DNA of 61,098 nt. Origin: Octopus bimaculoides (lineage: Eukaryota). Below are positions 10,774 through 16,518 of the stretch, piece after piece. Position numbers and translations under genes: made by a program. Within the stretch, counting starts at the first letter, position 1. Every line of letters begins with the position of its first letter. The stretch spans positions 1,891,323 to 1,952,420 of the forward strand of contig NC_068989.1 of the NCBI RefSeq assembly GCF_001194135.2, written 5' to 3'. Below the pieces are notes generated by a model. The model saw nothing but the letters and a program-made list of their open reading frames with translations. It did not search any database and had not been told where the DNA came from.

Positions 10774-11978
10774 AGAGGAACTATGCCTCTAAAATATGGG
10801 ATTATGTGAAAGAGAGAGAGAGTACATGCGTATGTAAATGTATGTGAGTGTGTGAGAGAGAGGGGCGAAAGAATATGAGTGTCATTGTAAGCGTCTGTGC
10901 GTGTGCGACTCAAATAAATTATTCAAGAGACATTTTCCATTATGTCTAATAACACAAAGATGGCAGAACCGGTGTGAATTATTTTCCTTCCTCACCACCT
11001 TAAATGTACATAATTCTCATTACTTTGTATTCTTTTTCAAGCATCATTGGGTTATGAAGGTCAGAAAATATGCATGCATTCAACAGTTGTTAATTGTCCG
11101 AATCAGATCGATATCTATACCACTGTTGCCATTGATTTGTGTTCGATGGGAGTGGGACACGGAGAGGTTGTGAACAGATTTCCAAGGGAAATAACCCTAA
11201 GTGGATACAGATAGTATTTTCCCTTTGTCAAGGGAGGTAACATAGGCCTTACAAAATTTCTGATCAAATCATTCGATTAATCCGTTCGACTTAATTCATC
11301 GTTTTTTGTGGTAATTTTCTACTAAATATTCAAAATGTCGATTTTTCAAGAGCTCTAAATATTCCGCAGCCTTTTACAGACATATTTTTCTATACTAAAT
11401 TTTGAATATTAATTCATTTCAGTCATAGTAGTAATATTGAACTGCGATTTAGTTTCTCGGCTATCAATGATTGTAACCGTGAAGCCTCGCAAGTCTACTG
11501 GCTGGGATATTGCACTCGTGATCATAAGAGTGGTTTCGATTCCCGAGCTGGGTGATGTGTTGTATTCGTGAGCAAAACATCTCGCATTGCTCCAGCCTCC
11601 TCAGCTGTAAATAAGTTGCTGAACGATATTCTTTTACTTGTTTCAGTCATTAGACTGCGGCCATGCTGGGGCACTGCCTTGAAGAATTTTAATCGAATAG
11701 ACCCCAGTACTTTTTTTTTAAAAGCCTGGTACTTATTCTATCGATCTCTTAAGCGGAACCGCTAAGTTACGGGGGATATGAACTAACCAACATTTGTTGA
11801 CATACACACATATACACATGACAGGCTTCTTTTAGCTTCCATCTACCAAATCCACTCACAAGGCTTTGATCGGCCCGTGGCTATAGTAGAAGAGACTTGC
11901 CCAAGTTGTCACGCAGTGGGATTGAACCCGGAACCATGTGGTTGGAAAACAAGTTTCTTATCACACAGCCACTCCTGC

Positions 11979-12015
<37 letters not shown>

Positions 12016-12025
12016 NNNNNNNNNN

Positions 12026-12063
<38 letters not shown>

Positions 12064-12241
12064 TAATTAACAGCAACAGAAGCAGTATTAACACCAAAAA
12101 GCAATCCTTGATCTCCAATTTAATTTGGATGCTGCTTTAGAACATAGAATACTGAGTTATTTACCTTGAAAGTGGATCTCATAAGGACACATGGTGCATA
12201 AAAACACTCGTAATTATATCCTTGACAGACGAGAACCGACA

Positions 12242-12314
12242 GCTACGGGTCAGAAATGTCAGATTACATGATTTCACCCTGCAATGAGTTCCTCAGTGAC
12301 AGATGTCCAGCAGC
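12242..12314 (-). ncRNA. Candidate type I hammerhead ribozyme downstream of the PSME3 stop codon
   Basis: Minus strand: UGUCA-CUGAGGA-ACUC(AUUGCA)GGGU-GAAA-U(CAUGUA)A-UC|UGACA. Stem I extends past an internal loop (GCUGCUGG/CCCGUAGC). Folded by hand. Confidence 0.65.
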
Positions 12315-13171
12315 AACAGATGTCCAGCTGAATCTCCCAACAATATATATACAATATCATTGCCTATTCAGGCAGTGATGTCACAAATAGCCTCAAGGCT
12401 TATCAAAAAATAATAACGAAAGAAGCTCTATTAATATCAGATTCGTGATTTTTGTTTGTTGTTTTATACAGTTGAGGTGTTAGAGTGTGGCTCTGCTGGA
12501 GGTGGACCAATGTCCATTGCAAGTGGCCATTCATTGTCCATTGAGCATGGAAAAGAGACATAAGAGATTATGATGAGATTATCTCACACACACACAAGAA
12601 TGAAAACGAAAAAGACAAGCTATAAAATGAGAAGAAAAAAATAAAAAAAATTGGCAGCTTTATTCTTAGATATGAAACAGAAGCATGCAAGTTGGCATTA
12701 ATTGCTGCTCCCTTTTTTCCTGATCCTGAGCCCTTTGTTTCCCAAACTCATTCTGGGCAAACAAGCGACATTCGAGATACCAAGTGAGCTGATATTTGAA
12801 GAAGAATGTCAAAAAATGAGATAAAAGAAGACAACAAAACTGGTGGTGGCAGGGAAATATGGAGGTTTGACCAATTCCTTAACATTTTAATGTTTTATGA
12901 TATTTAGGTTGTGTTTTTTTGGTATGGGCTATTGTTTAAATTTGATTTAATTAAACTGATGTCATTATTTCTTCTCTTTTTTTTGTTTTTTAAATGGCCT
13001 TAAATATTTGTTTTTTGAGAAAAAAATATCTTAAAAATAGTTGAAATAGAATATTAAAAAAGGTAACTAAACCCGGAATGTAGGTATTTCTTATCTCAGT
13101 TTTTTGACTTTTTCTCTTTTTTTTTTTTTTTTTTGTAAATATTTTGTTTAAGACTGAGAACATATGAAGTT

Positions 13172-13252
13172 TTAATAGAGATTCTCTGCATTGGCTGAAC
13201 GTGGTTTCTTGATTTTCTCAATATTCTTCATGACAACATCGTGTAAAGATGC
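13172..13252 (-). CDS. PSME3: PSME3 last coding exon: ASLHDVVMKNIEKIKKPRSANAENLY*
   Basis: tttgcag acceptor; C-terminus matches PA28-gamma LHDxxxKNIEKIKxPRSxNAExLY; TAA at 13174-13172. Confidence 0.97.
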   Translation of the reverse strand, partial: ASLHDVVMKNIEKIKKPRSANAENLY

Positions 13253-15294: not shown

Positions 15295-15819
15295 CTGAAA
15301 GTGTTTTAAACAAGAATTAATTATTTTGTAACTCTCAATAGAGACAAATTAGACCACGGGAAATGAAATGTGTGTGTTTGTGTATGTAAATGAATTTAGA
15401 ATGAAAAATTACTCAATGGATGTAGTAGACTTCATTCATTTCTTCAAAGTCAAGGTCTTCCCCATCCTCCATCATGTTTCATTTCAGTGTTACAAGACTC
15501 AGAACCATAAAGAATTGTTTGGTCACTACACCTGAGAAATATCCCACCATTTTAAAAATGGAAGGTGCATATCCAAGATTATATAATCTAGATACACTAT
15601 CCTTAAACAGAGATGGGATGGTCATGGATTGATTGTCTTTGGTCATAGGTTTGCTCACTTAAAGTTGATTTGTTTTCTACCAAAGACAAAGCAAATGAGA
15701 TACCAACCACTCTGGTATTCTGTCGGTTACAACGATGAGGGTTCCAGTTGATCCCAGCAATGGAGCAGCCTGTTCAGGACATTAACATGCAAATGGCTGA
15801 GCACTCCACAGACAGACAT

Positions 15820-16385
15820 GCTCTTAATCTAGTTTTCAATATATACACAAAAAATAAGCAGAATGCAGATGGATTGAAGATATACTGGAGGTGCGAAAAT
15901 TGTGTGTGCAAGGTGAGACTTCAAACAGATGAAAAGTCTAAAGAGCTGAAGAACACTGGAATCTATAATCTTGCTTCAACTGCTGCAGAGGTAAATGCAA
16001 GGATAAGAGTTTCAAATATTAAAGTGAAGTCTATTTCATCTCGAGGTGCCCCTTGCTCAGTTATCACTGGTGAAGTTCAGATTTTAAACAACTGTACATT
16101 GTCACAAATACCTCCGTTTGCACAGCTTAATAGGAATATTAGACGTTGGAGGCAAGCGGATTCCAACTATCCTGACACCCCTCTTACAAATCCTGGGTTT
16201 TCCATTCCAAGGTAGGAATACTCCAACCTTGACAATGATGAGACGTTTTTAAAGTATGACAGCAGGACGGATGATTCAAACCAAATACTAATATTTGCAA
16301 GTGACGAAGCACTTCAACAGTTAAAACAGCGGGCGACAGATGGAACATTTAAGTGCTGCTCTAGTATATTTTTTCAGTTATATAT
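15820..16385 (+). mobile_element. MULE (Mutator-like) transposase remnant with FLYWCH-like N-terminus, in a PSME3 intron
   Basis: IYTKNK...IYWRCE..CKVRLQT (FLYWCH-like). After one in-frame TAG at 16213-16215 it continues FLKYDS...ILIFAS...DGTFK...FFQLY (MULE DDE start). Confidence 0.85.
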
Positions 16386-16518
16386 ATACTTTAAAAATAT
16401 ATATATATATATATATACTTTAAAAATATATATATATATATATATATATATACTTTAAAAATATATATATATATATATATCCAAAGACCATCATACATCT
16501 CGAGAAGTGTATACATTT

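Follow-up and report, generated by a model that had tools for sequence, protein, structure and literature searches.

The present analysis concerns a stretch of Octopus bimaculoides DNA of 61,098 nt, referred to here as the window, which is 100% identical to O. bimaculoides GCA_001194135.2, chromosome CM046609.1, and which carries a hammerhead-ribozyme motif in the 3′ flank of the gene PSME3. PSME3 lies on the minus strand, with exons that were located by tblastn with human PSME3 from ~19.4 kb down to the last coding exon, and the best database matches of the gene are Octopus PSME3 proteins. The motif is on the sense strand of PSME3, 876 nt beyond the stop codon, and three poly(A) hexamers (at 12951, 12891 and 12664) occur between the stop and the motif, with the 50-nt block around the AATAAA at 12664-12659 showing 100% identity to Octopus sinensis. 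A preliminary description of this DNA had placed the motif between that AATAAA and an ATTAAA at 12124-12119 on the PSME3 sense strand, and both signals are present at these positions. PSME3 transcript contigs from a related octopod end at a homopolymer ~35 nt after the stop and are hence uninformative on the 3′ end of the transcript. The features to which the text refers are as follows, in the coordinates of the window.

13172..13252, minus strand: last coding exon of PSME3, ...KKPRSANAENLY (ends AENLY), with stop codon TAA at 13174-13172 (tblastn and translation)
12886..12951, minus strand: two ATTAAA hexamers, 12951-12946 and 12891-12886, upstream of the hammerhead
12659..12664, minus strand: AATAAA, 508 nt past the PSME3 stop and ~360 nt upstream of the hammerhead
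12438..12440, no strand: insertion point of extra O. sinensis DNA (collinear alignment)
12294..12327, minus strand: 17-nt tandem duplication, 88% identity (repeat search and alignment)
12092..12316, minus strand: ~225-nt repeat unit with the hammerhead at its 5′ end (nhmmer profile, blastn)
12257..12301, minus strand: minimal type I hammerhead motif, read directly from the sequence; sole descriptor match in the window
12301-12297 with 12261-12257, minus strand: helix I, 5 bp, UGUCA/UGACA (sequence reading)
12290..12296, minus strand: core C3-A9, CUGAGGA; U4 is 12295 and is A in the O. sinensis orthologue
12276..12289, minus strand: helix II and loop 2, ACUC 12289-12286, AUUGCA 12285-12280, GGGU 12279-12276
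12275-12272, minus strand: GAAA, G12-A15.1 (sequence reading)
12263..12272, minus strand: helix III region AUCAUGUAAU, a decayed form of the 10-nt palindrome AUCACGUGAU
12242..12256, minus strand: 3′ side of the helix I internal loop (UUUCUGA) and distal helix (CCCGUAGC)
12119..12124, minus strand: ATTAAA inside the repeat unit, where copies A and B (below) read ATTAAG
11985..12065, no strand: (TA)n microsatellite with assembly gap (sequence reading)

Direct reading of the minus strand at 12301-12257 gives a hammerhead-ribozyme motif with a CUGANGA/GAAA core and type I topology, and the longer stretch from 12314 to 12242 on the same strand reads GCUGCUGG-ACAUC-UGUCA-CUGAGGA-ACUC-AUUGCA-GGGU-GAAA-U-CAUGUA-AU-C-UGACA-UUUCUGA-CCCGUAGC. 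Three helices surround the core, helix I being open and helices II and III loop-closed. Helix II consists of 4 bp including one G-U, with a loop of 6 nt, and helix III of 2 bp (A12272-U12263, U12271-A12264) around the 6-nt loop CAUGUA. C17 is at 12262 and U16.1 at 12263, with the cut predicted between 12262 and 12261. Past an asymmetric internal loop (ACAUC/UUUCUGA) there is a distal helix in which 7/8 positions are paired (12314-12307 with 12249-12242). The invariant hammerhead core is complete in this copy (C3 U4 G5 A6 N7 G8 A9, G12 A13 A14, A15.1-U16.1, H17), and every coordinate given in the preliminary description for the helices, core, GAAA, internal loop, 7/8 distal helix and cut site agreed with our reading. 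Its characterization of the hammerhead as complete-looking holds for the core and the three helices but extends neither to covariance models nor to predicted folding. No Rfam hammerhead model matched the window motif at gathering score, nor even at E<=10 in a search of 271 nt (12150-12420), and the predicted fold of the motif region was not more stable than that of shuffled sequence (z = 0.22), the hammerhead secondary structure evaluating at -8.2 kcal/mol versus a minimum free energy of -15.5. The 17-nt tandem duplication spans the 5′ strand of helix I together with the first three core bases and is the source of the 5′ strand of the distal helix, and the O. sinensis sequence differs at this site. 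When both strands of the 61-kb window were scanned with a custom type I descriptor, no second hammerhead was detected. The window was also simulated 400 times with a first-order Markov model, and motifs at least as good (helix I at least 5, helix II at least 4 and helix III at least 2 bp) arose at 0.0075 per simulated window and a relaxed version at 0.05, and a rate of 0.0075 would translate into hundreds of chance occurrences in a genome of several Gb.

The motif occupies the 5′ end of a repeat unit which, downstream of the hammerhead, has a conserved tail of ~165 nt terminating ...TTGGAGATCAAGGATTGCTTTTTG. An nhmmer profile made from four copies matched window 12316-12092 over profile positions 2-219, and blastn aligned the window with two further copies from O. 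sinensis, copy A (L013 38845-38647 versus window 12302-12095; 74% over 210 nt, E 8e-27) and copy B (L013 38900-39010; 77% over 113 nt, E 4e-18). At the aligned positions copy A reads CUGUCA-CUGAUGA-G...C-GAAA-UCACGUGA-UC-UGACAG, with helix I extending to 6 bp, a textbook core and, in helix III, the perfect 10-nt palindrome AUCACGUGAU. The Rfam model Hammerhead_HH9 matches copy A across its entire length, including the internal loop and distal helix I, at 25.2 bits, short of the gathering score of 52 (E 1.9e-4 in that search). Rfam models were run on the window, the region of the motif, its orthologue and a further 89 kb of Octopus DNA, and across all of them this sub-threshold match was the sole hammerhead match. 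Helix II of copy A is disrupted (GGCC/GAGC), so that copy A is itself imperfect and all copies seen are decaying. Copy B is truncated 5′, inside its own ribozyme, and is joined head-to-head with copy A in a palindrome-like arrangement between inverted SINE/LINE tails. The reading frames of the repeat unit are riddled with stop codons. Because the window motif aligns with two further copies, one of which has a canonical hammerhead, it is not a chance match, and the alignments indicate that it is a true hammerhead descendant forming part of a repeat. The earlier observation that no repeat in the window matches the flanks of the motif is correct but misleading, in that the unit is repeated in O. 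sinensis.

Three independent copies were found, all in the PSME3 3′ flank: one orthologous pair, and copies A and B. The copies in O. sinensis are no more than 1.4 kb from one another. Homology between copies is confined to the unit, which has a shared 3′ end, CTTTTTG, beside microsatellites, and divergence between copies is ~26%, twice the orthologue divergence of 12.5%. The search for Octopus copies covered ~150 kb (the window, L013, L015 and L016), and no copy was seen elsewhere in the window, elsewhere in L013 or in 44 kb of unrelated Octopus DNA (L015 and L016, two loci reached through homologues of a LINE reverse transcriptase and a MULE transposase). Zero copies in ~105 kb of other Octopus sequence argues against a very high copy number, of at least one per 35 kb. 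Since copies were found in one 3′ flank only, with none in the ~105 kb, a genome-wide family is putative. The repeat unit was absent from the non-Octopus ENA contigs (L017-L020), and an exact-pattern scan of metagenome contigs for the hammerhead of this family gave 0 matches.

The true O. sinensis orthologue of the motif is at L013 39669-40043, which corresponds in a collinear alignment to window 12440-12066 with 86% identity over 383 nt. With 4-kb flanks the O. sinensis locus had appeared to be without the motif, and this reading was rejected when 10-kb flanks showed the orthologue past a block of 3.56 kb. That block (L013 36105-39668) separates the hammerhead from the AATAAA of PSME3, is missing in O. 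bimaculoides, and contains a LINE-type reverse transcriptase fragment (RVT_1), SINE/LINE 3′ tails with (GAT)n, and copies A and B. Its position between AATAAA and motif implies that spacing to PSME3 is unconstrained. The orthologous motif reads UGUCA-CAGAGGA-ACUC-GUUGCA-GGGU-GAAA-UCAUGUAAUC-UGGCA, in which U4 of the invariant core (window 12295) has become A, giving CAGAGGA. Further changes in the orthologue are in loop 2 (12285), in helix I, where a U-A pair is U-G (12259), in the internal loop, which is longer by 2 nt, and in distal helix I, which has two substitutions including U to A; no Rfam hammerhead model matched the orthologue at E<=10. Alignment of the two orthologues gave a broken core and an altered distal helix I, and the core is lost in a close relative. 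The A10.1-U11.1 pair, G7 and the decayed helix III are common to the window copy and its orthologue, and these changes are therefore older than the species split.

Conservation of the motif does not exceed that of its flanks or the neutral level. Identity to O. sinensis is 68/73 in 12242-12314, as compared with 87.5% over 1116 aligned bases (binomial p=0.09), and 42/45 in the minimal motif (binomial p=0.17), and several bins in the flanks are 96–100% identical. At the observed divergence an intact core of 11-13 nt is expected to survive in one lineage with a probability of 0.43-0.49, so that selection is unnecessary to explain the intact core in O. bimaculoides, and at ~13% divergence from a source copy 16–22% of copies would keep an intact core.

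Several features of the window copy indicate decay. The G10.1-C11.1 pair that closes helix II is nearly universal in hammerheads and is part of the A9/G10.1 metal site. In the window this closing pair is A10.1-U11.1 (A12289-U12276), versus G and C in copy A and in the HH9 consensus, a change in which pairing is kept. In helix III, AUCACGUGAU has become AUCAUGUAAU through C to U in ACG (a CpG site) and G to A, with loss of two palindrome pairs, and the free energy of the helix III homodimer is -4.2 kcal/mol for the window copy versus -14.3 for copy A. The sixth pair of helix I is also gone (G to U at 12256). Helix III is by these calculations too weak for a monomer, and a dimer partner was not found in the window. 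The window copy is probably inactive or very weakly active as judged by its sequence, and some residual self-cleavage may remain.

These patterns are consistent with a motif that is very probably the neutral, decayed remnant of a metazoan retroelement with a type I hammerhead, of the retrozyme or Penelope-like kind, inserted before the species split, inactive or very weak, and without a role in PSME3. The ~225-nt stretch at 12316-12092 on the minus strand would be one copy of a repeat element that carries a hammerhead, and the motif would be its 5′ part. In a working member of the family, helix I would have 6 bp with an intervening internal loop, helix II would have 4 bp and helix III would be very short. 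By analogy with related elements, from the literature on which the steps of dimerization, circularization and reverse transcription are taken, the 10-nt palindrome AUCACGUGAU of helix III would pair two ribozymes into an active dimer; the dimer would cut multimeric element transcripts after H17, yielding unit-length RNA with 5′-OH and 2′,3′-cyclic phosphate ends; and this RNA might be circularized by an RtcB-type ligase and then copied to DNA by a Penelope-type reverse transcriptase. The insertion, at a site downstream of PSME3 that is flanked by TA-rich runs, would predate the split of O. bimaculoides and O. sinensis. Neutral drift after insertion would have kept the 11 invariant core bases and lost G10.1-C11.1, the two helix III palindrome pairs and the sixth helix I pair, leaving a window copy that would have no partner copy nearby for dimerization.

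The setting of the copies bears on the family of elements to which the unit may belong. The window copy is flanked 5′ by a TA run at 12343-12352 and 3′ by (TA)n ~30 nt from the end of the unit, and (AT)n directly adjoins the 3′ end of copy A. Penelope-like elements favor microsatellite targets, have tails of 30-40 bp and leave adjacent inverted, 5′-truncated copies (PMC8557442, PMC11167929), and features compatible with such signatures were seen here among few copies, namely TA-rich flanks, the ~30-nt gap to (TA)n and the inverted, 5′-truncated copy B. Metazoan hammerheads are mostly type I: helix I has 6 bp and a loop making contact with loop 2, helix II has 4 bp, and helix III has 1-2 bp and a palindromic loop. 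They act as dimers, have their home in Penelope-like elements or retrozymes, and are often scattered singly or in opposite-strand pairs 100-700 bp apart (PMC4209133, PMC7229834). The suggestion in the preliminary description that the short palindromic helix III is of the type found in Penelope-like elements is supported by copy A and by the architecture known from the literature. No tandem head-to-tail units were seen, the window having one unit and the O. sinensis pair being inverted, and among 50 ORFs of the window and L013 that were compared with Pfam there was no GIY-YIG or Penelope-type reverse transcriptase ORF and a single RVT_1, within a LINE-type fragment. With neither a GIY-YIG/reverse transcriptase ORF nor a tandem array, the Penelope-like/retrozyme assignment draws on architecture together with the literature. 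A 10-nt direct repeat flanking the unit was considered as a target-site duplication and rejected, as its 5′ copy falls in a duplication specific to O. bimaculoides and the repeat is absent in O. sinensis.

An alternative explanation could be that the copies are locus-specific duplicates, produced when segments of the PSME3 3′ flank were duplicated and inverted locally, with the A/B segment later lost by O. bimaculoides. This would fit the clustering of all O. sinensis copies within 1.4 kb, the count of 0 copies in ~105 kb of other Octopus sequence, and the palindrome-like form of A/B between inverted SINE/LINE tails, but homology that stops at the unit ends, with a common 3′ CTTTTTG beside microsatellites, and a divergence between copies that is twice the orthologue level are not what such an origin would suggest. 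Moreover, mobile elements of many animals are known to carry hammerheads of this type (PMC4209133, PMC7229834), and the insertion of Penelope-like elements into earlier copies, forming inverted pairs, is itself known (PMC8557442, PMC11167929), so that on balance we consider purely local duplication improbable.

It is also possible that the ribozyme has been exapted in O. bimaculoides, where it would cut read-through or long-3′UTR transcripts of PSME3 or promote co-transcriptional termination, which is the domesticated function that the preliminary description had proposed. The location 876 nt past the stop codon of PSME3 and on its sense strand, the intact invariant core bases, the helix II pairing retained via A-U and a helix I internal-loop geometry like that of natural type I ribozymes are all compatible with such a role, for which there is precedent in the Clec2 ribozymes and the amniote intronic HH9/HH10 ribozymes (PMC6155905) and a possible parallel in Xenopus, where the few retrozyme copies that overlap exons tend toward 3′UTRs (bioRxiv 10.64898/2026.07.22.740005). 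The comparison with O. sinensis nevertheless speaks against it, with U4 replaced by A, conservation no higher than in the flanks, differences in distal helix I and the internal loop, and the 3.56 kb block between motif and PSME3. The three poly(A) hexamers upstream, one of them in a perfectly conserved block, the weakness of helix III as a monomer with no dimer partner in the window, and the failure of the window motif to match any Rfam hammerhead model point in the same direction, as do its membership in a repeat unit and its departures at G10.1-C11.1, helix III and helix I. The proposed function is thus disfavored by the data, and we regard it as very unlikely. A variant restricted to O. bimaculoides is a young co-option, in which the relic would self-cleave, alone or aided by protein, and trim PSME3 read-through at 12262/12261 as a 3′-end processing signal; protein help for self-cleavage has reportedly been described for the hammerhead of an Anolis Penelope-like element, and we give this variant the same slight likelihood. 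If co-option were true, it would be a rare case among invertebrates in which a host gene relies on the ribozyme of a transposon for 3′-end formation, and one that is lineage-specific and already lost by the sister species.

A chance origin, in which CUGANGA...GAAA and its stems came together at random and without ribozyme ancestry, would agree with the hundreds of equally good motifs expected in a genome of several Gb, with the lack of an Rfam match and with a fold no better than shuffles, but it is refuted by the homology of the motif and 165 nt downstream with two copies, one canonical and HH9-matching, and has next to no probability.

The reading of the motif as a decayed relic of a retroelement can be set against hammerheads described elsewhere. 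The Octopus unit is similar to metazoan type I retrozyme and Penelope-like hammerheads in its type I topology, ~6-bp helix I with internal loop and distal helix, 4-bp helix II, very short palindromic helix III, low G+C and unit length of a few hundred nt, as well as in the occurrence of scattered single copies, opposite-strand pairs and 3′ ends beside microsatellites (PMC4209133, PMC7229834). Unlike in those elements, there is no tandem array or RT/GIY-YIG ORF near the Octopus copies, and the window copy differs further in its A10.1-U11.1 pair, decayed palindrome and 5-bp helix I. The Schistosoma Sm-alpha element, which is SINE-like, is likewise a short non-coding repeat unit with a canonical type I hammerhead, but it is high-copy with cleavage proven, whereas the Octopus unit is known from a few copies and as sequence alone. 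Among the amniote intronic hammerheads HH9 (RF02275) and HH10, HH9 is the one to the entire model of which copy A aligns, and retroelement hammerheads are its presumed source (PMC6155905). At orthologous sites HH9 is ultraconserved, in contrast to the Octopus orthologue, which has lost U4 and is conserved to the same extent as its flanks, and to the window copy, which is unmatched by the model. The Clec2 3′UTR hammerhead of rodents and platypus resembles the Octopus motif in lying on the sense strand past the stop, with a suggested link to poly(A) site choice (PMC6155905). The Clec2 ribozyme is of type III with a long insert, is conserved, and has been shown to cleave (Martick et al. 2008, reviewed in PMC6155905), while the Octopus motif is of type I, contiguous, unconserved and situated beyond three poly(A) hexamers.

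The literature searched contained no Octopus family of this kind of hammerhead, and the present data would extend the thousands of type I hammerheads known from animal retroelements by a single eroded copy and a small family in Octopus. They also call for caution, in that an old repeat copy can by chance retain a hammerhead whose core is intact. As the core would be kept by chance in 16–22% of copies, a 'complete' motif near a gene is no evidence of domestication unless it is conserved in the orthologue. Hammerheads are numerous in at least one other cephalopod, with 235 Hammerhead_1 loci in the giant squid genome (PMC6962438). In Octopus, Penelope-like elements expanded ~56 My ago, and O. vulgaris and O. 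bimaculoides split 13-33 My ago (PMC13282606), dates with which a divergence of ~26% between copies and 12.5% between orthologues is in agreement.

A block of 3.56 kb in the Octopus sinensis PSME3 locus (L013 36105-39668), shortly 3' of the PSME3 AATAAA, is present in that species and absent from O. bimaculoides, where the equivalent point is window 12438-12440. The length difference could have arisen in O. sinensis by insertion or in O. bimaculoides by deletion. The following features lie inside the block:

L013 36105-39668, within: LINE-type reverse transcriptase fragment with a YADD motif (RVT_1)
L013 36105-39668, within: two SINE/LINE 3' tails, inverted and with (GAT)n, one on either side of the hammerhead-unit pair
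L013 36105-39668, between these tails: the hammerhead-unit pair, head-to-head

The tail of copy A, one of the O. sinensis hammerhead-unit copies, also gave a weak match to the Rfam Histone3 stem-loop at L013 38718-38762, minus strand (14.3 bits, E 0.35), which is far under the gathering score and is probably due to chance.

Small repeats were also found at the hammerhead unit of O. bimaculoides:

window 12294-12327: 17-nt tandem duplication, 88% identity, spanning helix I (5' strand) plus the first three bases of the core
window 12311-12320 and 12071-12080: exact 10-nt direct repeat, TCTGTTGCTG in the minus-strand reading, with a spacing of 240 nt and one copy on each side of the hammerhead unit

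Because the sequence of the upstream copy of the 17-nt duplication differs in O. sinensis, the duplication looks like a slippage or conversion event specific to O. bimaculoides. The 10-nt direct repeat is probably a chance occurrence, since its 5' copy falls within this lineage-specific duplication and the repeat is missing from O. sinensis; a target-site duplication is another reading that it could be given.

Beyond the hammerhead unit come a (TA)n microsatellite and an assembly gap and then, adjoining their far side, a SINE-like repeat of a common Octopus kind (window 11627-11984), several copies of which, 70-85% identical, occur in the PSME3 introns of both octopus species.

Around the AATAAA at 12664, O. 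bimaculoides and O. sinensis agree at every position of a 50-nt stretch (window 12650-12699; 100% identity, compared with 87.5% overall), as would fit a role of this AATAAA as the principal poly(A) site of PSME3. Some 40 nt 3' of the PSME3 stop codon, the genome itself encodes a run of about 19 A (window 13116-13134, minus strand), which could be a source of internal priming in oligo-dT data. Transcript contigs from a related octopod (L003 and L009) end at a homopolymer in the equivalent place.

One PSME3 intron carries a MULE/FLYWCH transposase remnant in both octopuses (window ~15739-16386, plus strand; L013 26936-28308, minus strand). Among its closest database relatives are an annotated protein of the shrimp Macrobrachium nipponense (77% identical) and a protein from an ENA contig (79% identical) adjoined by an LTR-retrotransposon pol. 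Judged from these sequences, identity between phyla is unusually high, and the transposase may therefore have been transferred horizontally.
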